Virus record (IMG/VR): IMGVR_UViG_3300032770_000002
Location: 124,001-188,000 of that record
DNA length: 64,000 bases
Reading direction: 5' to 3' (one strand)
Shown one piece after another: positions 486 through 63,388 of the stretch (position 1 is the first letter of the stretch; every line of letters begins with the position of its first letter). The translations under genes and the position numbers were made by a program. The notes under the pieces were generated by a model, which worked only from the letters and a program-made list of their open reading frames with translations, searched no databases and was not told where the DNA came from.

Positions 486-767
486 ATGAGCACTGGCATC
501 AGTCGGATTCTCGAGTCGAAGGACAACACCAAGCGTGTCGGGCGTGACCTCGTCGACGCGCTAAACAAGCTGAAGGAGTGCGTCCGAGTTCAGCTCGTTG
601 ACAACCAAGAAGAAGAGGTGGAGGGCCGCGAGCTTGCCATTGGCCGGCGCATCCTCGAAATCTGTGGTGGCACAATGTCCCACAAGGAAGTGGCTGAAAT
701 TCGAGAACTGGCCCAAGAGCTCGTCAACATTCACTCGCCCACCGGTCCTGAACCGGTTCTTCAATGA
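486..767 (+). CDS. hypothetical protein
   Basis: 93-aa ORF, phage-like codon use, co-directional with neighbours. Confidence 0.65.
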   Translation: MSTGISRILESKDNTKRVGRDLVDALNKLKECVRVQLVDNQEEEVEGRELAIGRRILEICGGTMSHKEVAEIRELAQELVNIHSPTGPEPVLQ

Positions 768-11521: not shown

Positions 11522-12235
11522 CTAGACGACGTAGATGACCAACGGCCAGTCCTTTGACAAAGCCTGGATGTAGATGTTGGCGCACTCCGACATCTCGATG
11601 ACATTTTGGTCCTCTTCTTCATCGGCGTGGAGCGCCAGTCTTCGCAAGTGTCCGGCTTCAATGACGCGCAGTCCCTCCAGCTTCTGGCAATCTTTGACGC
11701 TTCGTCGTTCAAACTGACTGACCCAACAGCACTCGATTGGCGTGATGATTCGCTGAACGGGAACCTTGCGGTCGCCGATGAAGATGTGGTTGTCCTGCAT
11801 GGACCACTTGACCCACTTGGACAGCGGAAACATGGTCGGACAAAACAGCACACCACGTGCAACGGCATCCTGGAGCGATGTTGCGCTGACGTGGATGGTA
11901 ATGGACGCACTCATGTTTTCTTTGGTGCGCATCGTTGCGAACGTGCGCTTGACCAGGTTTAATGGATTGGACTGTGTTAGCGGCATAGGTCCACTGATGA
12001 GCAGTGGGATGTATGGGCAGAACAACCCAAAGTTCCTATCCCGATTGGCACTGACCTGCTCATTCGTGTATGAGACGAAGAACACCTCCCCGTGCTGGTC
12101 GACATACTGCGACGAGACGAGTGGCCGGCTGGTGCTGCACGGCTCACCGTCAGGGAACATGTGGCGGCCAATCCAGACATCTCCTGGCCCGTTTGGCCGA
12201 AGTGCGTGGGCCTTAAACTCCTTAGAGGACGACAT
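11522..12235 (-). CDS. hypothetical protein containing a T4 gp23 C-terminal-like peptide
   Basis: FGLFCPYIPLL...KRTFATMR resembles the capsid motif GxFYCPYxPL...GFxTRY; ATG 12235 overlaps the upstream stop. Confidence 0.6.
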   Translation of the reverse strand: MSSSKEFKAHALRPNGPGDVWIGRHMFPDGEPCSTSRPLVSSQYVDQHGEVFFVSYTNEQVSANRDRNFGLFCPYIPLLISGPMPLTQSNPLNLVKRTFATMRTKENMSASITIHVSATSLQDAVARGVLFCPTMFPLSKWVKWSMQDNHIFIGDRKVPVQRIITPIECCWVSQFERRSVKDCQKLEGLRVIEAGHLRRLALHADEEEDQNVIEMSECANIYIQALSKDWPLVIYVV

Positions 12236-12710
12236 CCGCGGCCTTGTTGCGCAGTGACTTCTTCCAGTCAGCGAAAATCTGGCGTGACTCTTCAGGAGTC
12301 TTGTCGCCGATGGCGATATACTCGATCTCGCAGGTTGGCTGGACATTTACCCGAGCGTCAACGTCAGGCCAACTAGCATCGGCTGCGCCATCTTCAGGCC
12401 AATTGACCGTTGTGACGTCGATGCGGTGGCCTTCACCGATGATGTATGTTCTCGACGCCGGTGGATTGACCACCCACTTGTTCTCGTCCTTGAGCACCAC
12501 CTGAAGCTGTGACTCACCGATTGGCATGACTTGGCCATTTTGGGTCAAGCTGAAAAAGATGGTGTAATTGTGGCAGGTAGACTCGGCGGCCTTAATGGCG
12601 GGTAGGACCGGCAAGGCCGACGGTTTAGCCAGCTTCCGAAGGAACGAAATCGGGGCTGCGGCCACGGCTAAACTGCTCAGCACTCGGCTGATGAATAAGC
12701 GTCTCTTCAT
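12222..12710 (-). CDS. twin-arginine-leader hypothetical protein
   Basis: MKRRLFISRVLSSLAVAAAP N-terminus. Confidence 0.65.
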   Translation of the reverse strand: MKRRLFISRVLSSLAVAAAPISFLRKLAKPSALPVLPAIKAAESTCHNYTIFFSLTQNGQVMPIGESQLQVVLKDENKWVVNPPASRTYIIGEGHRIDVTTVNWPEDGAADASWPDVDARVNVQPTCEIEYIAIGDKTPEESRQIFADWKKSLRNKAADVVL

Positions 12711-12981
12711 ACGCCCTTAAGAACGGGCCTCGGCCACACTTGATGTCCATGAACATGATTGGACTGGTTGGCAAACTCATTGGTTGAACTGAGATAAGTT
12801 GGTCGATGACATCGCACTCCGACATGTTTTGAATGACCGGGAAGATCCACCTTGGGAAGTCGCCCACTTTACGGCGGGCCACGCGCCAGACTGGCTTGAT
12901 GAGTTTTGGAACGAAAATCCTAGGTCCAGACAGGACGACTAAGCCAGACGCAAGAACCTTGAAGAAACTGCGGCGGTGCAC
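12625..12981 (-). CDS. twin-arginine-leader protein with a T4 gp23 N-terminal-like peptide
   Basis: MHRRSFFK leader; VGDFPRWIFPVIQNM...DQLISVQPMSLPTSPIMFMDIKCG resembles the gp23 'VQPMxxPTG/S' region. Confidence 0.65.
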   Translation of the reverse strand: MHRRSFFKVLASGLVVLSGPRIFVPKLIKPVWRVARRKVGDFPRWIFPVIQNMSECDVIDQLISVQPMSLPTSPIMFMDIKCGRGPFLRAYEETLIHQPSAEQFSRGRSPDFVPSEAG

Positions 12982-12993
12982 GGTGAAAAGAAC

Positions 12994-14043
12994 TTAAATT
13001 GGCGGATTTGTTTCAAGGACCAGCCACGTTCCAGACTGAAAGTAGTAGATCCTGGCTTCTGATTTCAACGCGATGTGCGGGTCGGTCGCCGCTAAAGTCC
13101 AGTAAGTGCCGTCTGTGGACGTAAAGACATTGCCTTGTTCAGAGCACATGGCAAATTTTGAGTTGCCAAATGTGACGCCTGTAAAGTTATCAGTCGTGTT
13201 CGGGGGTTGCGGGTCGCCGTGAATGTCAAACAGGGTGAAGATCGTATAGATGTCCCACGTGACGCCGTCAGAAGTGGTCGCAACTAAGCCATTGGCGCCA
13301 ACAGCGACGAAAAGGTTTAGGTCACTGCTGTAGCAAATCGCCGCAAAGTCATCAAAGGCCCCGGTTGATTGAATCGTCCAACTACTGCCATTGGGTGATG
13401 TTGAGGCGCCGCCACCTTTGCCAACGCCGATAAAAATGCCATTGCCAAACGCAACTCCTCTGAAGTCCGTGGAGCCTGAGGTGTGCACGTTCCACGCTGA
13501 ACCGTCAGTTGAGTTGATGATCGTCCCGCTGTCTCCAACGGCCACAAATTGACTGTCGGCAAAGATTATGCTCCACAGGTTCTGGCTCGTTGCGACCGAC
13601 TGTGGCGTCCAGACATTCCCATCAGGGCTGCTTTCAACGTCACCGCCGAATCCAACGCCGACAAGAAGCCCTGCGCCAAAAGCGTGGGAGAAAATGTTTC
13701 CTGACGATGAGCCCAAATTGGTCCAATTTAAACCGTCGGTTGACGACGTGGCCAGGCCGCTTCCGCGAACTGAAAGCAGCGTTGTTCCATTGGCTGAGAT
13801 GTCGATGAGCAGCGATGAGCTCCCGCTTGCTCGGTCACTCGGCAAGAAGACAAAAGTGTCAGTCGGCGCCGGCGGTGATGGCGTAATTGAGATTGGGATT
13901 GAAGCTACTGGCCCAGTTCCATGGCTCTCGCCAGAGAAGAACGTTGCCGCTTCAACCGGGTTGCTTGGGTTTAGGGTTGGATTGACCCTAACGTAGCATC
14001 CAGGAAATGTCTCACGCGTGATGTCCATCACGCCTAACAACAT
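12994..14043 (-). CDS. beta-propeller protein with Asp-box-like S(T/P)DGxxW repeats
   Basis: Six repeats: SSTDGLNW, SSPDGNVW, NSTDGSAW, TSPNGSSW, TTSDGVTW, TSTDGTYW. Confidence 0.75.
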   Translation of the reverse strand: MLLGVMDITRETFPGCYVRVNPTLNPSNPVEAATFFSGESHGTGPVASIPISITPSPPAPTDTFVFLPSDRASGSSSLLIDISANGTTLLSVRGSGLATSSTDGLNWTNLGSSSGNIFSHAFGAGLLVGVGFGGDVESSPDGNVWTPQSVATSQNLWSIIFADSQFVAVGDSGTIINSTDGSAWNVHTSGSTDFRGVAFGNGIFIGVGKGGGASTSPNGSSWTIQSTGAFDDFAAICYSSDLNLFVAVGANGLVATTSDGVTWDIYTIFTLFDIHGDPQPPNTTDNFTGVTFGNSKFAMCSEQGNVFTSTDGTYWTLAATDPHIALKSEARIYYFQSGTWLVLETNPPI

Positions 14044-33594: not shown

Positions 33595-36500
33595 ATGGCA
33601 ATTGAAGTCAGGTTCGCCGGAGAACGTGACGCCGCAAACCCCAACATCATTCACTATGTTGGAAATGCGGGCACAATCGCTGGCACATACTACAGCGACC
33701 TGACGCTCGACTTCAACCTGGTCACGGGTGATTGGACGGCGAATGTTCCGCCAGGTTTTCCGGCTGGAGTCCAGGTCTCGGCATCGTGGATTGACCTCGA
33801 CCCGCACGTCGTTCGGCCAGAGCCAACGACCCGCCTTCAAAGCGCCATTGGACGTCCTGAGAGCGACATCATCAGCCCTGATTCACCGCGTCCTTGGCAC
33901 ACTGAACAACCTGGACTGGACGCCTATTGGAAGCTGGAAGAGTCGATAGGGCACGTTCGCGTCGACTCTGAGGATGGGCACGACCTCACCCCAGACACCG
34001 GCTATTTTGGGAACCAAGTGTCGAGTGACATTGGCATTGTTGGCACCTGCGCCTATGGGTCATCAACGTCGTATGGCCTCCTGATCAATGACGCCTTCAA
34101 CATCTCCAACAAGTCGTTTTCACTGACATTCTGGGCCAAGCAGTTTCCAGCGGCTCAACCTTTTTATCAGTGGGTCCTGTCGCAGTGCCAAACGGCCGAC
34201 CCAGTCCATGGCTTGGGCAATGACATTGAGTTTGGGATCTACAACTACTACCCATTTGGCAACTTTGAGTGGCACGTCTTCCAGAATGATGGAACGGACA
34301 TCTTGCTAGATTCTGGGGCTGGTGCGTTTGTCACCAACGTCTGGTTTTTCTTCGCGTGCGGTTACGATGACGTCAACAAGGTCAGTTGGATTTCCGTCAA
34401 TGGAGCCCCGAGGATCACGACCCCATGCAACAGCGCTCGCTCGCACACGCACACAGACTTTAGGCTGTTTTGGGTAAGTGGTTCGTCGAACTACCTTAAC
34501 ATCCCAAACTGCTTTTACGGGTGGATTGATGAGGCGGCCTTCTGGAGCCGCAACATGACCGATGACGAGATTTCGGCTTACTACAACGGCACCCGTAAGT
34601 TCGATGAGTTCGAGACAATCACCGTCTATGGAACGGTGCCAGGGACGGTTGACTTCGAGTTGTTTGATGACGCGCCATGGCACCGGTCGCTGACGGGCGA
34701 TCGTGAGCGTCGGCTCATGACGGACATGGACCTCACTGGACCGTCCTGTCACGCCATCGCCACGCTGACCATTCCAACGGTCCTCGATCAAAGCAACGTC
34801 CCATACACCTTGTCCACAGTTAAGGGACTGACTAGCGCGCTTCCACTTCAAACTTCAGCCGCAGTTAGCGACGAGTTTGGCGACCCATGCTTCGCCATCG
34901 CGGTTCCTGGGACTGTCGCCGGGACGGTCATTTCAAACGACCCGATCTTAACGCCAACGGGCCTCGTCTATGGCGTGCTCGTCAGTGACCCACAGTCATT
35001 TTTTACCCCCACGTTTCGTGATGGGCTGTGGGAATGGTGGCCATTTAACGAGCACCCTGAGTCCAACCTGACCGTCTTTGAGCGGGTGTGGGGTGGTTCG
35101 ACTGACCTTGACGGTTTCCTTGACACGGATCGCACGCTCATTGAGGACTGGGGGTGGGCGCTTCACGTTCCGCGTGAGCGGTCAATTACGCTTCCATTCC
35201 ACGAAGCCACAGCTTTTGGCTCGATGACATTGACCGAGCGATTTCAGCTCGTCAACGACCTAGGCGACGGCACGTCCACACTCTTTGCGATTGACAGTCT
35301 GCGAGTCACCGTTGAGAGCAGCTCAGGGAGCTACACGCTTCGAGTTGAGGTTTGGAGCGGCGGCACGTGGACCACTGAGGCCTCGACGAGCGTCAGCCTT
35401 GGCGTTGACTACTACCTGGCCATCGTCTTTGACGGGTCGGTAGTTTCACGCTTCTTGCTCTACGCCGAAACTGACGTTGACCCGGCGCCGACGTTCAGTG
35501 GCGGTCCATTCGCCGACACGGCCGACCTGACTGGGTCGATTGAGGCGTCCATTTCCTGCGACCTCCTGACTTTCTACGTCTACGACCTTCGAATTTGGAC
35601 AAGTGAGAAGACGGACACCGAGTTGAAGGCGATGCGGCGCCGAGTCATCCACGAGGCTCCGCAAGCTCGGTGGCCTTCGGTCGTCCCAACGGAGCAGGGG
35701 TCTGGGTATGCCTTGCTGACGTGGGCGCGAAGTGGCTTTGTCTACCCTGGCGGGCCGAGTCCCACCATTGTTGGTGGCACGATGGCGACTTGGCTTCTTG
35801 AAAAGGAGAGCGTCAGCATCCTCCTCAAGGCGGCCCGCGTCTTTGACGACATTCGAGTTGAAGACCTAGGGTTCGGCGGTGGCCAAGCCATCGTTGAGCC
35901 GTGGACCTTGGGCTCGCAGTTTTCACTGGTCCTCGCTGACTCAAGGGCCGTGGTCGCGTCGTCGATGGGCGTCATTGGTGACAACCCAATTTGGGAGGGT
36001 GAGTTTGGGCCTTGGGAACCGGAGGCAAACCGCAACATCACGGCACACCGGGCATGGTTCAGTGGCTCTGGGAAGTCGTGGGACATCGAGGTTAAGTCGA
36101 CTATCGGTGGCCCAGCTCTCGTCGCGATTGAGGAAGACTTGGGCGGCATGGGGAGCGCACTCGTTGACGCGGGCCATGAGGCCCTTGAGGTCATGACAAC
36201 CGGGTCCATCGTCACGACTGGCACGGTGGACCACGGGGCCAACATGTTCCTCTACAGCCCAACGAGTGTTGTCGTGGACATTGCGGGCATCGACGAGTGG
36301 GTTGACCAGAACTCGTTTGGGCTAGGGCAGAACCCTCCCGTTGCGGCCATCGACTCACGTGGCAAGCTGACGTTTTACGTGGCGACGGCCCTTTCAGCAG
36401 GACCTTACCGGTTGACGCTCGACGCCGGGAACATTGGGCAGGTGGCTAGCGACTTTGTTGGGCTGCAAGTCGACGTCACCATCGCCCAAAGTTCAACTTA

Positions 36501-38964
36501 CTCACTGACAGTTCGTGGTGATGGCCAAGTCGACCCGCGTGGCTACGTCACACTTGACTTTGAGTTAGACTCTGCCATTGCGTCAGGGTGGTTGCTTGAG
36601 CTTGCGTGGGGTGGGAAGCTTGACTTCCCACAGCTCAACATCGGCTACGCCCTAGCCGTCTACGGGTTCACGATTGAGTCGAGGCTTCCGGTCCTCTATC
36701 GAGTTGACTCGCCAGCTGACTTGACCCAGGTCATTGCAACGACTCATGTCGTCAACCCAATCTACCCAGGTGGGACAATCCCTGGAGGGTGGGTTGGAGT
36801 TGTCGGCCCGTCTGGGTCAATCGTTGACTGGATTCACGAGTCCGAGGCTGACTTGCGTCCGCTCATGACTGGGTTTCTCGCGTCGGTCCCGAGCGAGACA
36901 ATCACTGGACTGAGCATGCGGCGGGCCGAGGACATCCTCCTCGCGTCCAGTCCTTGGTCGCTGCCTGATCCATCGGCGCCAAGCGCACCGACCGTCACCG
37001 TCTCTGGGCCACTCACTGGCCTCGAAGGCGACACGCTGACTTACACCGTCTCGGGCGTCGCCAACGCGGTCAGCCTTGTCTGGCAGTTTTGGGACGGTGA
37101 GGTTCGAACGACTGACGCGACGGTCACATCTCAAGACAAAGTTGCCAACGCTGGCGGCTCATGCACGGTGACGGTCACGGCAATCAATGAAGTCGGTGAC
37201 ACGGCTTTAGACTCAGCGACAACGCTCGTGGACTTTGCCCCGGTCATTGTGAACGTTGTCGTCAGCAAGAATGACTCTGTTGCGCCATACAGCTCAACGG
37301 TGACCGTCGTTGCTACCGACCCAGACTCAGCGCCAAGTGGGGCGTTCCCGGGGTCGAAGATTTACGGCACGCTTGCGGGCACCATTCAGTCAACTTCTTC
37401 AACCGTCTCTGGGACGCTGTATGGGACGCTCAATTTTGGGGTGACGGTGACAACTGACGCCGAGGAGGACTTGGTGTTGACCGATGACTACGGGTCGTCC
37501 AACACCTACCCGCTGATGTTCCGCACCAAGCCGAGCAGGCCAGTCCTTGTCGTCGCAAGCGCGTCGCCGCCGTCACTGAAGCTTGGGCCAAACGCGAGCG
37601 TGACGCTGACGGCCGTGGCGACTGACCTTGACGGCGAGGCCATCGTCTCGTTTGACTGGGCCTTGCTCGTCGCCAACGGCTGGTCCAGCGACCAGCACCT
37701 CAGTGGAACTTCTAGGGTCCTTGGCGGTGGCGCGACGCAAAACTCAGTCATTGTCGACTGCTCCGCTGAGTCGGCTGGCACTGTGACGGTGACGATCACC
37801 GTCACGACGGCCACCGGAAAGACTGGGACGAGCGACCTCTCAGTCGTGTTCGAGCCAGCGTCGGCCCCAGTCATCAACCATTTCGACATTCTCGGCATCG
37901 TCACCCCAGGGAACTTGACGACGGTGAGCGCCTACGTGACGGACCCTGGCAACAGCCCACTGAGTTACGCGTGGGTATTTGATGACCCATCGGGCGTCAC
38001 ACGCTACGGCAATCCAGTCCAGGTCATCGCGTCGGGCCCAGTCATCAAGGGGACGTTGACGGCGACGGACGCCGTGGGTGACTCGGTAACCGAGGCCATC
38101 CCACCGATCCTCCTGTCATCGCAGCTTAACGTGGTCGGGACGATCGGCGAGCAGTTCATCTACGTCCCTACTGTGATGGGCTCACTCCCGGTGACTCTCT
38201 CAGTTTCACAGCTTGCTCCAGGTCTTATTTTTGTGGGCGGGACGATTAGTGGCGTGCTTGCGGCCGTCGGCATCGGCACGCTGACCGTGAGCGCAACAAA
38301 CACGGACGGGTCTGACACGCGAAATGTCTACATCGAGGTTCGTGAAAGCGCTCTAGCTGCGCCGGCCAACTTGCGAGTCAACAGTGCCGCCATCGCGGCG
38401 ACATACGGCCCAGGCGACAGCGCGGTCGTCACCTGGTCGTCTGACCTTACATTGTCGACGATTCTGCGCTTCTACACAATCGCCGGACAATTGATGCTTG
38501 AGACGAAGCTTGACCCGGGCGTGGAGGTCTTCGTCCTCGACAACGCCCACATCATCTCAACGTTCGGGTCTGAGTCTGACTTCCGCGTGCGAGCTTACTC
38601 GTCCGATGGCACCAACGAAAGCGGTGACTATGCCGAAGTGACGGTCACGCGCTCATCGGCTCCGGTGTCATCGCCGATGGCCGTTTATTGGGGCGTGCAA
38701 GCCGACCCGACAATTACTGACCCAGAGATTGCGGCGCTGAGCAGCGCCGTTCAGACGAGCCGAGCACTCTCGGTGACGTTAAACCCGTCGGCGCAGTATC
38801 TCTACTTCGCCTTCCCAGTCGCCTTTGGAAGCCCGGCGTTTTACATCAGCGGGTTGCTCACAACGGCTTGGGTGTTGACGACCAGGAGCTACGGCGGGGT
38901 GAGCTACAACATCTACCGCTCAACGAACATCTTGACTGGGAGCTACCCTGTTGTCGTCGTCTAA
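33595..38964 (+). CDS. large virion structural/adhesin protein (two LamG-like, PKD/Ig-like and FN3-like domains)
   Basis: AYWKLEE...FSLTFW...GWIDEAAFWSR (LamG); LSYAWVFDD (PKD-like); LAPGL.F.GGTISG (Ig-like); T/V/S/D-rich. Confidence 0.85.
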   Translation: MAIEVRFAGERDAANPNIIHYVGNAGTIAGTYYSDLTLDFNLVTGDWTANVPPGFPAGVQVSASWIDLDPHVVRPEPTTRLQSAIGRPESDIISPDSPRPWHTEQPGLDAYWKLEESIGHVRVDSEDGHDLTPDTGYFGNQVSSDIGIVGTCAYGSSTSYGLLINDAFNISNKSFSLTFWAKQFPAAQPFYQWVLSQCQTADPVHGLGNDIEFGIYNYYPFGNFEWHVFQNDGTDILLDSGAGAFVTNVWFFFACGYDDVNKVSWISVNGAPRITTPCNSARSHTHTDFRLFWVSGSSNYLNIPNCFYGWIDEAAFWSRNMTDDEISAYYNGTRKFDEFETITVYGTVPGTVDFELFDDAPWHRSLTGDRERRLMTDMDLTGPSCHAIATLTIPTVLDQSNVPYTLSTVKGLTSALPLQTSAAVSDEFGDPCFAIAVPGTVAGTVISNDPILTPTGLVYGVLVSDPQSFFTPTFRDGLWEWWPFNEHPESNLTVFERVWGGSTDLDGFLDTDRTLIEDWGWALHVPRERSITLPFHEATAFGSMTLTERFQLVNDLGDGTSTLFAIDSLRVTVESSSGSYTLRVEVWSGGTWTTEASTSVSLGVDYYLAIVFDGSVVSRFLLYAETDVDPAPTFSGGPFADTADLTGSIEASISCDLLTFYVYDLRIWTSEKTDTELKAMRRRVIHEAPQARWPSVVPTEQGSGYALLTWARSGFVYPGGPSPTIVGGTMATWLLEKESVSILLKAARVFDDIRVEDLGFGGGQAIVEPWTLGSQFSLVLADSRAVVASSMGVIGDNPIWEGEFGPWEPEANRNITAHRAWFSGSGKSWDIEVKSTIGGPALVAIEEDLGGMGSALVDAGHEALEVMTTGSIVTTGTVDHGANMFLYSPTSVVVDIAGIDEWVDQNSFGLGQNPPVAAIDSRGKLTFYVATALSAGPYRLTLDAGNIGQVASDFVGLQVDVTIAQSSTYSLTVRGDGQVDPRGYVTLDFELDSAIASGWLLELAWGGKLDFPQLNIGYALAVYGFTIESRLPVLYRVDSPADLTQVIATTHVVNPIYPGGTIPGGWVGVVGPSGSIVDWIHESEADLRPLMTGFLASVPSETITGLSMRRAEDILLASSPWSLPDPSAPSAPTVTVSGPLTGLEGDTLTYTVSGVANAVSLVWQFWDGEVRTTDATVTSQDKVANAGGSCTVTVTAINEVGDTALDSATTLVDFAPVIVNVVVSKNDSVAPYSSTVTVVATDPDSAPSGAFPGSKIYGTLAGTIQSTSSTVSGTLYGTLNFGVTVTTDAEEDLVLTDDYGSSNTYPLMFRTKPSRPVLVVASASPPSLKLGPNASVTLTAVATDLDGEAIVSFDWALLVANGWSSDQHLSGTSRVLGGGATQNSVIVDCSAESAGTVTVTITVTTATGKTGTSDLSVVFEPASAPVINHFDILGIVTPGNLTTVSAYVTDPGNSPLSYAWVFDDPSGVTRYGNPVQVIASGPVIKGTLTATDAVGDSVTEAIPPILLSSQLNVVGTIGEQFIYVPTVMGSLPVTLSVSQLAPGLIFVGGTISGVLAAVGIGTLTVSATNTDGSDTRNVYIEVRESALAAPANLRVNSAAIAATYGPGDSAVVTWSSDLTLSTILRFYTIAGQLMLETKLDPGVEVFVLDNAHIISTFGSESDFRVRAYSSDGTNESGDYAEVTVTRSSAPVSSPMAVYWGVQADPTITDPEIAALSSAVQTSRALSVTLNPSAQYLYFAFPVAFGSPAFYISGLLTTAWVLTTRSYGGVSYNIYRSTNILTGSYPVVVV

Positions 38965-39452
38965 TGCAAGTCTTAGGCACAGTCATTGCAGCCGAAATCA
39001 CCAGCGGCGACACGGACAACACCTTTAGCCTAGGCAACCTCAATTATTTCGCGGGCGGTCACAAGACCGCGGCCACGACGGCCGACCGTGACGCCATCAC
39101 GACTGAGCGCCGAATGGAGGGCATGACGTGCTGGGTCGTCGACATCCAGCAGCTCTACAGGCTTGTCGGTGGGATCACCAATAGCAACTGGGTGCTCGAG
39201 GTTACACCGGCCGTTTCACCAGTCAGTGGGTCTTGGCCACTCGGAAATGGCGATGACTCTGGCAGCGTCACCGGACTTGGCCTTGGATTCACCCCATCAC
39301 GCGTCATACTTTCCATTTCCAGGCCATCAGGCGGGTTGATGATCTTTGCCAATGACAATTCAGGGACGTTGACCACGGACGGTTTTGACTTTGAGTTGAG
39401 CGGCATGACTGACTCAACAGACTACGTGTTGAACTACGTCATCTTTCCATGA
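38964..39452 (+). CDS. virion structural protein
   Basis: TADRDAITTERRMEGMTCWV..YRLVGGITNSNW motif typical of phage virion proteins; TAATG coupling. Confidence 0.75.
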   Translation: MQVLGTVIAAEITSGDTDNTFSLGNLNYFAGGHKTAATTADRDAITTERRMEGMTCWVVDIQQLYRLVGGITNSNWVLEVTPAVSPVSGSWPLGNGDDSGSVTGLGLGFTPSRVILSISRPSGGLMIFANDNSGTLTTDGFDFELSGMTDSTDYVLNYVIFP

Positions 39453-42400
39453 AAACAAACCGTCTCATCGCGCTCTCAGCGATTGTCGCCTTGGCCTTGT
39501 TGACCATTGCCGCTGCCTCGAGAACCCCAATTCTTCGTGGGTTTCTTCAGAGTGACTTTGATGGAAACAATCTGTCAATCACCAACCTGGCGAGTGCTTC
39601 AGCCCAAAATCTCCTCTCGGCAAATGCCTTAATCGGGGAGCAAATTGGCAACGTCAGCGGAACCAACTCCATGGTCACGCTCAGGAGCACGCTGCCAGTT
39701 CCGCGTCACGTTCCACAAGGGATGTTTCAACTGTGGTATCTCCATGGTCCAGACGTTGGCTGGACTAACAGCCTGGCTAATGACACCACTTACACGATTA
39801 CAAACGTCGTTGCCTGGATGATAGGGGACGGCTTGCGTGACGCCGGGTTCAACTGGATCATGATCAGTGTCGGGTGCAACTCACCTTACCGCGACAGCTC
39901 TGGGGCCATCCTTTGGAACACGAACCTGTTTCCGGAAGGAATGCAGATTGCCGTGGACTACTGCCACAGCAACGGGTTTTACGTGTGCATCTACACTGAA
40001 CCGACCGCGTATCTCTACAACTCTGACTTTACGACTTACAATGGAACGTTCGTTGGGACGCCATTTGAGAAGATCCACACGGACGTGACGAACTTTGCGG
40101 CGATCGGGTTTGACGCCATCGAGGTCGATTTTCAGGGGTCATTCACCACGCCTAGGCAAAACCCTGGAATGCTGGTTGACTGCACCACCAACGGCGTGTC
40201 CGCTTACTTTCAACTGCTTCACCAGGAGGTCGCAAAGTGTGGCCGCCCAATGGAGATCAAGAGTGCCGGCATTCCACAATATCCTGATCCGTGGATGCCC
40301 GCAAGCATCAACGAGTGGGACCAGTTGGGATACTTCACCAACCAGGTCTTGATGTGGTCGAATGGACCCGCTACAGGGACGATAAACGTGGGCGACGACA
40401 CTCCATGGTCGGAGTATATTCGGTTCGACTTGGACATGCTGCGTTCAGACCTCATTGGACCAGGCCATCACATCTTCCGCAACAACATGCGGCTCAACAC
40501 GACGGTCATCCATGACCGAACCATCATGGCCTTTTCGGCCATCGAGTGCTCGGACCAGGTGCTCAACGAGATAGACTACCCGTGGATCTCCAGGCCGCAG
40601 CAGAATGCTGACTTGAGGAACAAAGCCTGGAGGTTAATCTGCAAAGACCCGGGTGTCATTCAAGGCCAGGTGTTGTGGCGCACAAACTGGGTTGACGTGG
40701 ACCAACGGCCGCTTGTTGACACGACCTACGGTCTAGCGGAAAAAGCCATCCTTCTTTACAATCGCAAAACTAACGCCGCGCAGGACATTACGTGTTACCT
40801 GCCAGTGCTTGGTTACGATACCAATCCAGTCGTCGTCCTTGACGTCTTCAACAACACCAACGTGACCATAACTGGTGGAACTTTAAAGGCTACGGCTGTT
40901 CCAACAAATAGCGCGATCCTCTTCCTCGCCTACATTCCACGGCCACTTGACCAGGTTGAAAGTGTTGACGCTGTTGGGAACATCGCCGTGTCAACAAGCA
41001 TTAGCGTGACGAACACGACGACGAAAAATGGTATCACGCTCTCATCCACTTCACTGCGTGGGACGAACGCCACAGCGGCACGATACTCTTTTGGCCTCGG
41101 CTTTGACACTAGCATTGGCTACGGCACGTTGCAGTTGGCCGGCTATGGCGGTTCAACTTGGCAGGCTTCGACGCTTTTTGGCACCACAAATCGCACGGTT
41201 GTTAGCGTGCAACGTCTCGATGGCCGAGTTGACCAAGGAAGCATTGGCCAGCTTTTCACCGTGGGCAAAGACGCGCCTCCTTATGACGGCACGGCGACTT
41301 TTGGAACATTTGAAATTGGAGGAAGACTGGAGCCTGACCCAACAAACAGCTTCCAGGTGGACAACGCCCAGATGAATCGAGCTTTTTTGGTCAACACAAA
41401 CGGGAATACGTTTGCTGGAGGCAACTTGACTGTGACCTCGAACCTTACGTCTAGGGTGTTGACGGTAACCAATCCATTGACTGGCCTTTACACCTACGTC
41501 GCCGGGGATGGCATCTTCGCGTCCAACGCGCAGACCAAGGCTTCGATGAATTACACCAATGGCATCCTTTCGACCACGAACCCGCTTGTCACGAACGGGA
41601 TTTTCGCGGCATATGCCGCCACGGCTTTTAACGGGATGGGGATCTCGCTCGGTGCCGGTCAATACGGGACTCCCCCGAGCGGCTTTGCATGGAACTTTGC
41701 TTCGCGTGGCCACCTAGTGCAGATGGTTTCTGGGTGGCAGGACGGAACCGTGGAACTTGGCAACATAGGCCAGGGGTTCATCTGGGCATCCGGCGCTCCT
41801 CCATACGACGGCAGCGCTGGATACGGAACAGTGGCAGTTGGCGGGTGGACACCTGACCCGACAAACTCATTTCAGGTGGACAACCACCAGCGGTATGGAT
41901 CATTCCAAGTCGGAACCAATGGCGTGACTTACGCCAACGGCGGCATCCGACCGGGTGTGTTCACCGTCGCCACTCTGCCGACAGCATCGGCCTACCAGGG
42001 AGTTGAAGTTTACTGCTCTGACGTGTTGACGCCTGCTGGGACAGGTGAGCGCGTCGTCTCCGATGGCACCAACTGGCGCACGATGCGAGACAATATCATT
42101 GCCACCACGACGCTTTCGGCTTATGTCTTCAATTGTGCTGAAGCGAGAGTCAACCGTATCACGAGCAAATCAACTATATACTGGAATGAAATCATCCTTC
42201 CGAGCACCGGTGGGTCAATGCCGCGCAATGTTCAAGCCTCTGGAACTGGCGCTGGCCAGGGTGAAGGCTCGTCCCGCAGCGACCTTGGCCGGTTTGGCTA
42301 CATCAGCACTGGCACGACGACGACAGGAGCGTATAAGGTGTGGACGGGAGGTGAACCAGGACTGAGCACAGATGAAGCGTATGGATTTGGTGGCAATTAC

Positions 42401-42844
42401 ATCGTGTCAACGGGCGGCACGCCCACCGACCAATTTTACGTCTACATAGGTTTCGGAAACAACGTTGCGGCTGTGCCAACCACGGCCGCGTGCGGCTTCC
42501 TTTACGACCCTGGCAACGTCACCGGTTACACAGGGACGTCCTCATCAACCAACAACTGGTGGTTTCTTCACGGCACTGGCGGCGCCCTCGTGGCAACTGA
42601 CACCGGCGTGGCTGTGACGTTTACCTCAGCGACGGCTCACAGACTTGGGGCCGAATTTGACGCGTCTGGGATTACGGCAAAGGTTGACAGTTCAACTATC
42701 TTCTCTGATTCGACCGACATCACCGAAAGCGCGCTGTATAACTGGATTACCATCGTCAAGACAGCTGGCACTACATCTCGCCTTCTATATGAAGCTCGGC
42801 CTTGGCTGCACATCCGGCAATCGACGCTCAAGTTAAATCCGTAA
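39449..42844 (+). CDS. signal-peptide protein with GH27 (alpha-galactosidase-like) TIM barrel and tail-fibre-like C-terminus
   Basis: GLRDAGFNWI...RDSSG...FPEGMQIAVDYCHSNGFYVCIY...FAAIGFDAIEVD; duplicated APPYDG...PDPTNSFQVDN unit. Confidence 0.75.
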   Translation: MKTNRLIALSAIVALALLTIAAASRTPILRGFLQSDFDGNNLSITNLASASAQNLLSANALIGEQIGNVSGTNSMVTLRSTLPVPRHVPQGMFQLWYLHGPDVGWTNSLANDTTYTITNVVAWMIGDGLRDAGFNWIMISVGCNSPYRDSSGAILWNTNLFPEGMQIAVDYCHSNGFYVCIYTEPTAYLYNSDFTTYNGTFVGTPFEKIHTDVTNFAAIGFDAIEVDFQGSFTTPRQNPGMLVDCTTNGVSAYFQLLHQEVAKCGRPMEIKSAGIPQYPDPWMPASINEWDQLGYFTNQVLMWSNGPATGTINVGDDTPWSEYIRFDLDMLRSDLIGPGHHIFRNNMRLNTTVIHDRTIMAFSAIECSDQVLNEIDYPWISRPQQNADLRNKAWRLICKDPGVIQGQVLWRTNWVDVDQRPLVDTTYGLAEKAILLYNRKTNAAQDITCYLPVLGYDTNPVVVLDVFNNTNVTITGGTLKATAVPTNSAILFLAYIPRPLDQVESVDAVGNIAVSTSISVTNTTTKNGITLSSTSLRGTNATAARYSFGLGFDTSIGYGTLQLAGYGGSTWQASTLFGTTNRTVVSVQRLDGRVDQGSIGQLFTVGKDAPPYDGTATFGTFEIGGRLEPDPTNSFQVDNAQMNRAFLVNTNGNTFAGGNLTVTSNLTSRVLTVTNPLTGLYTYVAGDGIFASNAQTKASMNYTNGILSTTNPLVTNGIFAAYAATAFNGMGISLGAGQYGTPPSGFAWNFASRGHLVQMVSGWQDGTVELGNIGQGFIWASGAPPYDGSAGYGTVAVGGWTPDPTNSFQVDNHQRYGSFQVGTNGVTYANGGIRPGVFTVATLPTASAYQGVEVYCSDVLTPAGTGERVVSDGTNWRTMRDNIIATTTLSAYVFNCAEARVNRITSKSTIYWNEIILPSTGGSMPRNVQASGTGAGQGEGSSRSDLGRFGYISTGTTTTGAYKVWTGGEPGLSTDEAYGFGGNYIVSTGGTPTDQFYVYIGFGNNVAAVPTTAACGFLYDPGNVTGYTGTSSSTNNWWFLHGTGGALVATDTGVAVTFTSATAHRLGAEFDASGITAKVDSSTIFSDSTDITESALYNWITIVKTAGTTSRLLYEARPWLHIRQSTLKLNP

Positions 42845-57904: not shown

Positions 57905-58255
57905 ATGACAGAATTGTTGACAGGCCGATCACGGCGAGGTTCAGAACCTTGGCTAGGTGTCGACCTTGACGCTACTTTGGCCACCCACAAAGAGGGCTCT
58001 GGCATTGATTCCATCGGTGAGCCAGTGCCTGGCATGCTTGAGAAGGTTAAGCGCGCATTGCGGGCCGGACGCAAGGTGAAGGTCTTCACCGCGCGAGCGG
58101 GTGACCCTAGGCAAATTCCGCTCATTCAGCAGTGGACAGTCAAACATGGGCTTGGAAAGCTCGAAGTGACCAACGAAAAAGACGAGAACTGTGAAGAGAT
58201 TTGGGACGACCGTGCCAAGAGCGTGGTTCCTAACAAAGGACGCTTTGCCAACTAG
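57905..58255 (+). CDS. HAD-superfamily phosphatase
   Basis: GVDLDATL, VFTAR, IWDDRA motifs. Confidence 0.8.
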   Translation: MTELLTGRSRRGSEPWLGVDLDATLATHKEGSGIDSIGEPVPGMLEKVKRALRAGRKVKVFTARAGDPRQIPLIQQWTVKHGLGKLEVTNEKDENCEEIWDDRAKSVVPNKGRFAN

Positions 58256-58259
58256 ATTT

Positions 58260-59396
58260 ATGAGTGAAGAGAACCAACAGGTGCCGGAATTTGACGTTCT
58301 AACTCCAGACATTCCACTGCCGCAAGTCGTGGCGAGGCAGGAAATTGCGGATGAACGGAAGGGAGCGTTTCGATTCAGCTTTATCGGGTCTGGCCAGGGT
58401 GGCGGGAGAATTGCGGCGACATTCCGCGCCCTGGGCTACAAGCGCGTTTGCGCGATCAACACGGCGCGTCAGGACCTGGCGTCGCTCCCAGCCGACGTTA
58501 AGAAACTCGTTATCGGCGATGGAGAAGGAGGTGCTGGCAAAGACCCAGCCGTGGCGAAGGCAGCGTTTGATAAAAACGCTGAAAATGTCCTAGACCTGAT
58601 GCGGGCGTCATTTGGCCAAGTGTATGACCGAACAATCATCTGTGTTGGGGCCGGCGGTGGAACTGGCGCTGGAACGGTGATCGGCCTTGTCGACAAAGCG
58701 CGTGAGCTTCAGGTTGCCAGCAAGTGTCCGACTGACAAGGTCGGCGTCATCGTTGCCCTGCCCAAGGTGACCGAAGGCCGGCGTCCAAGCATCAACGCTC
58801 ACACCGTCTTGTTATCATTGGTCGCCTACGTTGAACAGGGCTTTGTCTCACCGCTTATCGTTCTTGACAACGAGCGAATGAGCTCACTCTATCCTGGGCT
58901 CGCGATCGATCCATTCTGGGACACGGCCAATCAAAGCGTCTGTCGGCTGTTTGACCTCTTCAACATGATCTGCGTTCAAAATTCGACATACACCGCGTTC
59001 GACCCGGCTGATTACAAGTCGATCCTCGACTCAGGCCTGATCGTCTTTGGGGCCACGCCCGTCGCCAACTGGTCGGAGGCCGGCCAAATCAGCTCCGCAC
59101 TGCGAGACAACTTGAAGAAAAACATTCTTGCAGGAGGTGTCAACCTGTCAACTGGAACGGTCGCCGCGGCAATCGTTATTGCTGGAAAGAGCGTCTTAAG
59201 CCAAGTGCCGCACGAGCACCTCGACCAGGCCTTCGATCAATTGACAAGGTTGTTGAAAACAAACAGCATGGTGCACCGTGGCATCTACAGCGGAAACAAG
59301 GACTCCATGGCCATTTACACCGCAATTGGCGGCCTGGCCGCACCGACTGAGAAGCTGGACGAGCTGGCCAAAATCGGCGGGATAAGCGGTAAATAA
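58260..59396 (+). CDS. tubulin/FtsZ-family GTPase (TubZ/PhuZ/CetZ-like)
   Basis: GSGQGGGRI, AINT, GAGKDP, GAGGGTGAG signature, T7-like FDPAD; ATG 58260. Confidence 0.9.
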   Translation: MSEENQQVPEFDVLTPDIPLPQVVARQEIADERKGAFRFSFIGSGQGGGRIAATFRALGYKRVCAINTARQDLASLPADVKKLVIGDGEGGAGKDPAVAKAAFDKNAENVLDLMRASFGQVYDRTIICVGAGGGTGAGTVIGLVDKARELQVASKCPTDKVGVIVALPKVTEGRRPSINAHTVLLSLVAYVEQGFVSPLIVLDNERMSSLYPGLAIDPFWDTANQSVCRLFDLFNMICVQNSTYTAFDPADYKSILDSGLIVFGATPVANWSEAGQISSALRDNLKKNILAGGVNLSTGTVAAAIVIAGKSVLSQVPHEHLDQAFDQLTRLLKTNSMVHRGIYSGNKDSMAIYTAIGGLAAPTEKLDELAKIGGISGK

Positions 59397-60574: not shown

Positions 60575-63388
60575 ATGAATGAGCCAATGCCAACACTGAA
60601 TGAGCGCGTTGAGATCTTAGATGACCTACCAAAACCGATAATTGACGACGCTTCTGCTGCACCTGAACCAGCTCGCCTGACGCGAGTCTTTTCAAAGTCA
60701 GGAATTTGCCCATTTGACGACGTCACGTGGATCAAGCGAGACGTCGACATCACCGATGACAAGGGTAAGGTCGTCTTCACGCAGAAGGGCGTCGAGACTC
60801 CAGAATTTTGGTCCGACCTGGCTGTCAAGATCGTCGCTTCGAAGTATTTTTGGGGCGAAAAGAACACCGACCAGCGTGAACACTCCGTGCGCCAGTTGAT
60901 TCATCGCGTGTGTGACACCATTGCGACGTGGGCCGTTGAAGGACGATACGTTCACCCTGACGACGAGACGCTCTTCTACAACGAACTTTGCTGGCTTTGC
61001 CTGCATCAACACGCGTCTTTTAATTCGCCCGTTTGGTTTAACGTTGGGCTGTTCCACCAATATGAAGCCGGGCGCGGCAGTGAAGGCGGGTGGGCTTGGG
61101 ACCAAGACCTCGGCGAAGCTGTGAGGGTCAGGACGATGTATGAGAAGCCACAGTGCTCGGCTTGCTTCATCGTGTCCGTCGCTGACAACATGGAGGCACT
61201 CCTTGACTTGGCCAAGACTGAGGCGATGCTCTTCAAGTTTGGAAGCGGAACTGGGACGGACCTGACGCCCATTCGTTCATTTCGTGAGAAACTCTCCGGC
61301 GGTGGGTCGCCGTCAGGCCCGATGAGTTTTTTGCGCGTCTACGACCAGGTTGCTGGCATCGTCAAGTCAGGCGGCCGAACTCGTCGTGCGGCGAAGATGA
61401 ACACCATCCGTGACTGGCACCCTGACATCGAGGAGTTCATTAACGCGAAGCCAGTTGAGGAACGAAAAGCGCGGGCCCTAATCGAGTCAGGCTATGATGG
61501 CTCCATTAACGGTGACGCCTACTCGAGCGTGATGTATCAGAATGAGAACCTTTCTGTTCGAGTCAGCGACCAGTTCATGAAGGCAGCCACGAATGGCGAT
61601 GGAACGTGGTGGACAAAAGCGGTCACGAGTGGAGACCGGGTTGAGAAGAAAGACGCCAAGGACTTGCTGCACAAGATGGCCGAAGCAGCTTGGTTCTGTG
61701 GTGACCCAGGCGTGCAGTTTGACGGCGTCATCCAGCGTTACCACACGTGTGCTGGAACGGAGCCGATTCACAGCACAAACCCATGTGCTGAATATGTCTT
61801 CATCAACAACACGTCGTGCAACCTCGCCTCAATTAACCTCGTCAAGTTCATGGAAGGCGAGGTGTTCAACGTCGAGCGGTTCAAAGCCGCGGTGCGGCTC
61901 ATCTTTACGGCCCAAGAGATCTTGTTTGACAACTCGAGCTATCCAACCAAGACGATTGCCGAGAACTCGCACATCTTCAGGACTGTAGGGCTTGGCTTTG
62001 CGAACCTTGGCTCGCTGTTGATGGGCCTTGGCATTCCATATAACTCTGACCAAGGCCGTAGCATTGCCGCTTCGATTACGGCCATCATGACGGGTGAAGC
62101 TTACGCCACGTCGGCTGGAATGGCCAAGACGCTGGGACCGTTTCCGGGGTTCTATGACGCGCGCTGTTCGCACGTCAAGCACCCGGTCAAGGCGAACAAT
62201 GTTGAGTCGATGCGCGACGTCTTAAACCTCCACGCCGCACACGCGAGCAAGCTCAAGACTCCAGGGCACCGCTATCTCGATGCCGCCGCAAACGAGTGTT
62301 GGCTGCGGGCGATTGGACTGTTCAACTGCCACGGTGTGCGCAACGCCCAGGCAACGGTCATTGCGCCAACTGGAACGATCGCATTCATGATGGACTGCGA
62401 CACGACCGGGATAGAGCCAGAGCTTAGCTTGGTCAAGGTTAAGTCGCTCATCGGTGGCGGGTCCTTGACGATCGTCAATCGCTCCATCGGTCGGGTGCTT
62501 CGCCAGCTCGGCTACAGTGAGCCTGAAATTGATGCCGCGATCAAACACGTGGAGAAATATGGCCACCTTGAGGCCATCAGCGAGGACATCAAGTCGCCGC
62601 TCAGGATTGACGACCACCACGACGTCTTTGACACGTCACTGCCGGCCGGGCCGAGCAAGCGCTCCATCCCATACATGGCCCACGTCCAGATGATGGCTGC
62701 AGTTCAGCCGTTCATCTCTGGGGCGATTTCAAAGACGATCAACATGCCAGAAAGCTCCACGGTCGAAGACGTGAAGCAGGCTTACGTGGAAGCGTGGAAG
62801 TCTGGTCTGAAGTGTGTGGCCATCTACCGTGATGGCTCTAAACGAGCCCAGCCATTAAACGTCAAAAAGTTTGGTCAAGACAAAGCAGCGGACCCGGCGT
62901 TAAATGGCCACGGTGTTTATCTCCCAAATCGACACCGGCTCCCTGACACCCGGAAGGCCGTGACGCACAAGTTCAGCGTTGGTGGCCATGAGGGTTACCT
63001 GACTGTCGGCCTCTTTGAAAACGACATGCCAGGTGAGCTGTTCATCACGATGGCCAAGGAGGGTTCGACGGTAGGCGGCCTGATGGACACGATTGGCACG
63101 CTGACAAGTTTGGCGCTGCAGTATGGCGTGCCACTCGAAGCTTTAATCCGCAAGTTTCGGTCAACTCACTTCGAGCCATCTGGCATTACGACAAATCCAA
63201 AAATCCGGATGTCGGCCTCGATCATCGACTACATATTCCACTGGATGGCCCTTGAATTTGACCACGATGACGAAGTTTCCAGCGTCAGTGACGAGGTAAA
63301 GACGTGCCCACATTGCGGCCACGTGGCGCAGCGTAGTGGGACGTGTTACACTTGCACGAATTGCGGAAGCAGTCTCGGTTGCAGTTGA
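60575..63388 (+). CDS. nrdJ: class II (adenosylcobalamin-dependent) ribonucleotide reductase with TSCPD and zinc-ribbon tail
   Basis: FNSPVWFN, QCSACF, GSGTG, TNPCAE, CNLASINL, IAPTGTI, QPFISGAISKTINMP, YRDGSK. Confidence 0.95.
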   Translation: MNEPMPTLNERVEILDDLPKPIIDDASAAPEPARLTRVFSKSGICPFDDVTWIKRDVDITDDKGKVVFTQKGVETPEFWSDLAVKIVASKYFWGEKNTDQREHSVRQLIHRVCDTIATWAVEGRYVHPDDETLFYNELCWLCLHQHASFNSPVWFNVGLFHQYEAGRGSEGGWAWDQDLGEAVRVRTMYEKPQCSACFIVSVADNMEALLDLAKTEAMLFKFGSGTGTDLTPIRSFREKLSGGGSPSGPMSFLRVYDQVAGIVKSGGRTRRAAKMNTIRDWHPDIEEFINAKPVEERKARALIESGYDGSINGDAYSSVMYQNENLSVRVSDQFMKAATNGDGTWWTKAVTSGDRVEKKDAKDLLHKMAEAAWFCGDPGVQFDGVIQRYHTCAGTEPIHSTNPCAEYVFINNTSCNLASINLVKFMEGEVFNVERFKAAVRLIFTAQEILFDNSSYPTKTIAENSHIFRTVGLGFANLGSLLMGLGIPYNSDQGRSIAASITAIMTGEAYATSAGMAKTLGPFPGFYDARCSHVKHPVKANNVESMRDVLNLHAAHASKLKTPGHRYLDAAANECWLRAIGLFNCHGVRNAQATVIAPTGTIAFMMDCDTTGIEPELSLVKVKSLIGGGSLTIVNRSIGRVLRQLGYSEPEIDAAIKHVEKYGHLEAISEDIKSPLRIDDHHDVFDTSLPAGPSKRSIPYMAHVQMMAAVQPFISGAISKTINMPESSTVEDVKQAYVEAWKSGLKCVAIYRDGSKRAQPLNVKKFGQDKAADPALNGHGVYLPNRHRLPDTRKAVTHKFSVGGHEGYLTVGLFENDMPGELFITMAKEGSTVGGLMDTIGTLTSLALQYGVPLEALIRKFRSTHFEPSGITTNPKIRMSASIIDYIFHWMALEFDHDDEVSSVSDEVKTCPHCGHVAQRSGTCYTCTNCGSSLGCS

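Follow-up and report, generated by a model that had tools for sequence, protein, structure and literature searches.

A phage assembled from a wetland metagenome encodes, in a genome of 230,253 bp with direct terminal repeats that is estimated complete, a small and evolutionarily conserved gene in which a secretion-signal-like leader precedes a copy of the most conserved 48 residues of its own T4-type major capsid protein (MCP). This gene, hereafter ORF A, belongs to a large and undescribed family of capsid-peptide mini-proteins, whose function can only be inferred and for which mimicry of unassembled capsid protein is tentatively considered here as the most plausible. The window analysed corresponds to positions 124,001 to 188,000 of the IMG/VR virus record IMGVR_UViG_3300032770_000002, i.e. 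a stretch of 64,000 nucleotides. Elsewhere in the genome, a T4-type head module comprises a gp21-like prohead protease (Peptidase_S77, E 5e-18), followed by a 393-aa scaffold-like ORF and a 483-aa MCP of the Pfam Gp23 family (84.7 bits), the latter lying 119 kb from ORF A. The MCP and ORF A are the only Gp23-like sequences in the genome. The features discussed below are collected in the following table.

Location of the features under discussion (window coordinates unless a contig or record is given)
Feature	Position	Strand	Description
ORF A	12625..12981	-	118-aa gene, GTG start
Leader of ORF A	12874..12981	-	residues 1-36; twin-arginine motif, 12-residue Ala/Gly/Ser/Leu/Val stretch, basic P-K-L-I-K-P-x-W segment
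Gol box core of ORF A	12730..12873	-	residues 37-84; paralogous copy of own-MCP residues 89-136
Gol-homologous stretch	12763..12849	-	residues 45-73; positionally homologous to T4 gp23 94-122
C-terminal tail of ORF A	12625..12729	-	residues 85-118 plus stop; last 86 nt overlap the start of ORF B in another frame
ORF B	12222..12710	-	162-aa downstream gene with paralogous leader and unrelated, fast-evolving cargo
Gene just upstream of ORF A	12994-14043	-	349 aa, weak beta-propeller-type hits (DUF6242)
Very large ORF	33595-38964	+	1789 aa, concanavalin-like lectin domain, weak PKD hits
Very large ORF	39449-42844	+	1131 aa, alpha-galactosidase-like segment
Tubulin/FtsZ-family protein	58191-59396	+	TubZ-like C-terminal domain, weak PHROG hits to PhuZ-type tubulin
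Ribonucleotide reductase	60575-63388	+	class II (B12-dependent), TSCPD domain, C-terminal zinc ribbon
Own MCP (outside the window)	G000:C1:17422-18873		483 aa, Pfam Gp23 family
Tandem mini-genes, contig L009	L009:6001-8509		leader-bearing genes copying two MCP segments
Tandem mini-genes, contig L011	L011:5677-7108		leader-bearing genes copying two MCP segments
Leader gene beside an MCP gene, contig L018	L018:6823-9467		between acidic scaffold-like protein and non-Gp23 major head protein
Leader gene beside an MCP gene, contig L027	L027:36-1346		between acidic scaffold-like protein and non-Gp23 major head protein
Adjacent leader genes, contig L022	L022:37-384 and 490-678		identical leader, unrelated cargo
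Cys-rich Gol-box protein, contig L033	L033:1012-1611		CxxC...CxxC module joined to the Gol box
MCP of Bacillus phage SP-15	KT624200, 25569-28017		annotated in two pieces around a putative endonuclease

The first-pass annotation had described a stand-alone capsid fragment equivalent to the T4 Gol peptide and fused to a Tat-like leader, and this observation is confirmed, ORF A containing the peptide quoted there, though only in part as regards the leader. The capsid similarity exceeds chance, since BLASTP against the phage's own MCP gave 29/48 identities (60%, E 9e-19) and a six-frame search of the genome gave E 9e-16. On its own, ORF A scored only 14.6 bits on Pfam PF07068 Gp23 (E 0.022), below the curated cut-off of 24.4 bits, and its two orthologues scored 22.3 and 12.0 bits, whereas 18 of 20 family members matched Gp23 at E up to 10, the best at 4.6e-11. 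Only profile positions 6-50 out of 376 are covered, and the full capsid fold with its P, A and insertion domains is thus absent from this 118-aa protein. Regarding the equivalence to the T4 Gol region, it holds by position: ORF A residues 44-94 align to Gp23 profile positions 6-50, T4 gp23 residues 88-134 align to positions 1-47, and BLASTP pairs the VQPM motif of ORF A (65-68) with T4 114-117. The 29-residue Gol region, as defined in T4 gp23, binds EF-Tu (domains II/III), enables the cleavage of EF-Tu by the e14 protease Lit, and is the most conserved part of gp23, while gp23 of related phages is suggested to contact EF-Tu generally (PMC3014915). In T4, this stretch spans the end of the N-terminal region (residues 66-105, disordered before expansion and later the arm and N-fist) and the strand leading into I-domain linker 1 (PMC9546572).

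ORF A is a gene rather than a recent pseudogene fragment under no selection, which had been set beforehand as a condition that would refute the observation. Two full-length orthologues (P0001 and P0002), carried by short soil or forest contigs, are 59-64% identical to it over the full length, and pairwise comparison of the three sequences gave an overall dN/dS of 0.14-0.29 with saturated dS (1 or more), both leader and core being constrained. Of the six frames, only this one is open in all three sequences and it also has the lowest omega (0.11-0.32). Against the MCP copy, the core shows 66% nucleotide identity, with dN 0.37 and dS 0.92, so that the duplication is old. As for transcription, no RNA sequencing run was listed and only the source wetland DNA run was found to hold the locus. 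The C-terminal tail coincides with the leader of ORF B and shows a reduced dS in the overlapped part (0.5-0.9, against 1 or more elsewhere), which fits a dual coding constraint from this leader rather than a function of the tail itself; the tails of other family members are unrelated. The same overlapping arrangement of ORF A then ORF B is present in both orthologous contigs (L005 and L006), whereas the gene just upstream of ORF A is replaced in L005, the closest relative, by a different 111-125-aa gene, indicating that this slot is variable.

The leader combines the twin-arginine motif H-R-R-S-F-F-K at residues 2-8, at the junction of a positive n-region and the h-region, an uncharged stretch and a basic flank, which matches the minimal description of Tat signals (PMC13673990). 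The uncharged stretch is 12 residues long with a mean Kyte-Doolittle value of 1.82, at the short end of the range (family medians are 12 and 17). However, no curated Tat model (PF10518, TIGR01409) matched ORF A or ORF B, no AxA cleavage site follows the hydrophobic stretch in ORF A, and searches of the phage genome for TatA or TatC found none; among 20 family members, 6 weakly matched Pfam TAT_signal, the best at E 1.1e-3. In addition, the P-K-L-I-K-P-x-W-K region after the hydrophobic stretch is far more conserved than a generic signal needs. Within the 230-kb genome, a leader HMM found only ORF A and ORF B (E 2e-16 for the latter). The cargo of ORF B has no Pfam, PHROG or NCBIfam match and, having no similarity to the MCP, is rejected as another MCP fragment. 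A scan of 185,579 prokaryote species genomes returned no leader, which was found only in phage or metagenome contigs.

A profile of the three orthologues searched against 1.84 billion representative proteins found 188 proteins at E up to 1e-3, of which the best 150, together with proteins from fetched loci, were sorted into four groups. Of these, 33 carry the leader plus the Gol box and 62 carry the leader only, where a 33-residue leader is nearly invariant (14 invariant positions in a 16-sequence alignment) while the cargo is hypervariable (30-150 aa) and unalignable; ORF B is one of them, the others falling within a subset of P0012-P0145 and L016-L031. Another 72 are short proteins with a Gol box but no such leader, at least six of which are contig-end MCP pieces as judged from an upstream delta-domain motif, and the last 7 are full-length MCPs. 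Many of the short proteins have different N-termini, namely a Cys-rich CxxC...CxxC module or basic helices, and many also end in basic, aromatic-rich (tryptophan-rich) tails; a subfamily of 150-200-aa proteins (P0011, P0071, P0074, P0075, P0089, P0095, P0109, P0114, P0149, P0151 and the L033 gene) joins the Cys-rich module to the same Gol box. Three core-only members that were looked up are all complete internal genes within arrays of small ORFs. Isolated Gol-region ORFs are common in uncultivated phages, in about 100 small proteins, whereas tblastn of ORF A against 50,697 cultured-phage records gave no match at E 0.1. In two adjacent genes of contig L022, an identical leader precedes unrelated cargo, which suggests cassette-like duplication or gene conversion of the leader.

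The family is connected to capsids in several ways. First, in the L009/L011 lineage (one contig is 231.7 kb), genes with leader plus Gol box sit in tandem with leader-bearing genes whose cargo copies a second conserved MCP segment, matching own-MCP residues 252-305 (E 2e-7) and aligned to about 250-307 of T4 gp23, that is the strand and spine-helix region following the insertion domain. Second, in a SU10-adaptor-bearing lineage, namely a 41.5-kb IMG/VR contig with a SU10-type adaptor (L018) and L027, a leader-family gene sits between an acidic scaffold-like protein and a non-Gp23 MCP, its cargo being 39% identical between the two contigs while the MCP is 82% identical. Third, the Gol boxes keep MCP-like constraints, as per-position information correlates at r 0.73, the consensus residue is the same at 27 of 43 positions, and F, P, VQPM, P, Y and D are near-invariant in 96 mini-proteins, although this comparison is partly circular since the hits were found with a profile of these same positions. 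Besides, the Gol boxes track the MCP clade of their own lineage: the core of ORF A shares 28 of 43 positions with its own MCP, against 25-29 with its nearest orthologues and 16-17 with other MCP clades, while the core of the family member P0005 shares 34-36 of 43 with this MCP clade. Resemblance to the cognate MCP is therefore maintained or renewed.

The interpretation proposed in the first-pass annotation, i.e. a decoy or mimic titrating a capsid-sensing defence or poisoning assembly of competing T4-like phages, is only partly supported. A stand-alone, selected copy of the MCP segment homologous to the Gol peptide behind a twin-arginine leader is supported, but the argument that the conserved RR of the capsid motif (R100-R101 in T4) is replaced by QN as in a non-activating decoy is rejected, since the phage's own full-length MCP has AN at that position, which varies in step with MCP lineage in both MCPs and mini-proteins, and some mini-proteins keep RR. 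The titration of a defence, EF-Tu binding, Lit activation and the poisoning of assembly remain hypothetical, the decoy idea being plausible and consistent with the data.

As to origin, the analysis establishes that ORF A arose by an old partial duplication of the phage's own MCP gene, from which only the most conserved peptide was kept, and that it is a conserved accessory gene of a jumbo phage with T4-type head morphogenesis; homology, selection, modular architecture, the spread of the family and the tracking of the cognate MCP clade rest on the sequences themselves, whereas membrane targeting or export, the binding partner and the decoy effect are inferred only. In the reading favoured here, and only tentatively, the protein, which cannot form a capsid subunit, would display the epitope of nascent, unassembled MCP, probably at or across the inner membrane, and would compete with the real MCP for a host factor or capsid-sensing defence recognizing that peptide, in the way EF-Tu and Lit recognize the T4 Gol peptide, thereby acting as a decoy or buffer. 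Besides the positional identity with the Gol region, the purifying selection on both leader and core, the MCP-like constraint pattern of the Gol box, the Tat signal architecture of the leader, the maintained resemblance to the cognate MCP and the Gol precedent, this view is in line with features of accessory, arms-race genes, namely a patchy distribution, diverse N-terminal modules (Tat-like leader, Cys-rich, basic), the occurrence of the members looked up as complete genes inside arrays of small ORFs, a location far from the protease-scaffold-MCP module and, for one member, next to HD, nucleotidyltransferase/CoaE and PARP genes. On the other hand, no binding partner is on record and export to the periplasm would remove a decoy from cytoplasmic sensors, so that leader and decoy fit together only if the leader acts as an anchor or hitch-hiking tag; the paired mini-genes and the adjacency to an MCP gene in other phages fit an assembly role at least as well. 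Capsid proteins are frequent triggers of abortive-infection defences, but a counter-measure built from a piece of the capsid protein itself has not been described, and the roughly 100 relatives of this gene provide a concrete candidate set of a defined 43-residue module under MCP-like constraint, mounted on different targeting modules. In a broader reading, which is unlikely on present evidence but not excluded, phages of many lineages would encode capsid-epitope decoys displaying the most constrained peptide(s) of their own MCP on interchangeable targeting modules, so as to blind or mislocalise host sensors or EF-Tu-dependent suicide proteases that recognize newly made capsid protein, while the twin-arginine leader would separately define a new phage-specific delivery tag for a hypervariable arsenal of small effectors. 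Independently, this nearly invariant leader is a new handle for finding small phage effectors in dark matter genes.

The main rival, somewhat less likely, is a capsid-assembly or capsid-architecture factor, where the free N-arm/linker strand would dock in trans onto MCP subunits, as a chaperone holding the MCP assembly-incompetent, a nucleator or tether at the membrane, cement at unsatisfied lattice sites, or a poison subunit against co-infecting relatives; such proteins would then be a new class of trans-acting capsid-lattice peptides. The known contact roles of this MCP region (PMC9546572), the tandem mini-genes for two segments that flank the insertion domain in the MCP, the leader gene adjacent to an MCP gene in L018 and L027, and the tracking of the MCP clade favour it. 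Conversely, ORF A lies 119 kb from the head module among genes of unknown function, the family is patchy and modular, unlike core morphogenesis genes, and a peptide 60% identical to the phage's own MCP would also poison its own assembly. Complex prediction of ORF A residues 37-118 with two copies of own-MCP residues 60-483 returned a score of 0.00 and counts neither way.

An exported or membrane moron-type protein, for example for superinfection exclusion or envelope modification, whose capsid-derived segment would merely be recycled as a structural scaffold and have nothing to do with capsids or capsid sensing, is improbable. The Tat-type leader architecture, the hypervariable cargo and the absence of the leader from prokaryote genomes, pointing to a phage-specific module, speak in its favour, as do language-model neighbours of ORF B that include Tat-signal and periplasmic hydrogenase small-subunit clusters, though with scores of 0.78-0.79 these are weak leads only. 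However, the Gol box keeps MCP-like constraints and stays close to the cognate MCP clade, Gol boxes also occur behind non-secretory N-termini, and the leader family is linked to capsids three separate times, through two fused MCP segments and adjacency to an MCP gene.

About as improbable is an encapsidated and injected internal protein, with the leader as a capsid-targeting sequence like that of the T4 internal proteins and with ORFs A and B as variable cargo delivered with the DNA, possibly itself an anti-defence decoy. As in T4, whose cargo are anti-defence proteins (PMC3012670), a conserved N-terminal tag sits on small and highly diverse cargo, sometimes in tandem genes with identical leaders; a leader gene also lies next to scaffold and MCP genes in L018, and the phage has a gp21-type prohead protease. 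Yet, there is no sequence likeness to the T4 targeting sequence, the tag is longer, hydrophobic and Tat-like, no (L/I)-x-E site occurs between leader and core in ORF A, and the same leader is found in phages with unrelated MCP types, i.e. a Gp23-type jumbo phage and a contig bearing a SU10-type adaptor, which is hard to reconcile with binding a phage-specific scaffold.

A ribosomally made peptide precursor, with the leader as a recognition peptide for a modifying enzyme and the capsid-like part as the modified core, is very unlikely. In L009 and L011, two to four leader-bearing mini-genes lie directly upstream of a 215-aa radical SAM protein with a CxxxCxxC motif, extra C-terminal cysteines and no assignable subfamily, but that enzyme is present only in the L009/L011 lineage, this genome has no homologue of it, none is seen nearby in L005, L006 and the fetched locus L013, the enzyme matches peptide-maturase models only weakly and generically, far below their cut-offs, and the cores are long and lack the Cys/Ser/Thr richness typical of such precursors. 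A non-functional remnant of a partial MCP duplication that happens to stay open, despite the coverage of only 45 of 376 Gp23 profile positions and the lack of transcript data, is contradicted by the selection analysis and by the existence of about 100 related mini-proteins.

Compared with known systems, ORF A differs from the T4 Gol peptide in being a separate gene with its own leader rather than part of the MCP, although the VQPM..P motif and the hydrophobic pattern are conserved, and T4 itself shows no such stand-alone ORF in the stretch examined. The T4 vertex protein gp24 is likewise derived from the MCP gene by duplication within the same phage but keeps the whole fold (Gp23 profile 2-376, 327 bits), as against about 48 residues in ORF A. 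With Tat signal peptides, including uncleaved signal anchors, the leader shares a polar residue then R-R-x-F-F/L-K and a basic region after an uncharged stretch of 12-17 residues, which may count as the moderately hydrophobic stretch of such signals although that of ORF A is at the short end of the range. In T4, the 5' part of gene alt also persists as separate small ORFs (alt.-1/alt.-2, annotated as an old duplication of its first part), whereas ORF A is an internal MCP segment fused to a foreign leader, lies far from its source gene and belongs to a widespread selected family. While MCP paralogues and viral mimic peptides are already known, literature searches found no description of stand-alone Gol-region genes or of this leader family, and nothing relevant on capsid-fragment decoys or on twin-arginine leaders in jumbo phages.

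Other searches and predictions were of little help. PDB sequence searches with the MCP and with the family profile returned no capsid hits, the IMG/VR scan with the three-orthologue alignment and the NCBIfam search with ORF A, ORF B, the orthologues and the MCP returned nothing, and the ESM Atlas gave no usable hit for ORF A. AF2 predicted for ORF A only local helices, including one at residues 3-17 at modest confidence, and a hairpin (pLDDT 62, pTM 0.23), too weak for a fold search, while the prediction for the own MCP from a 6-row alignment (pLDDT 45) was unusable for mapping the segment in 3D. Within the window, the two very large ORFs listed in the table may be fibre or host-surface proteins. 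The closest cultured-phage MCP to that of this phage, at 30% identity, is the one annotated in two pieces in Bacillus phage SP-15.
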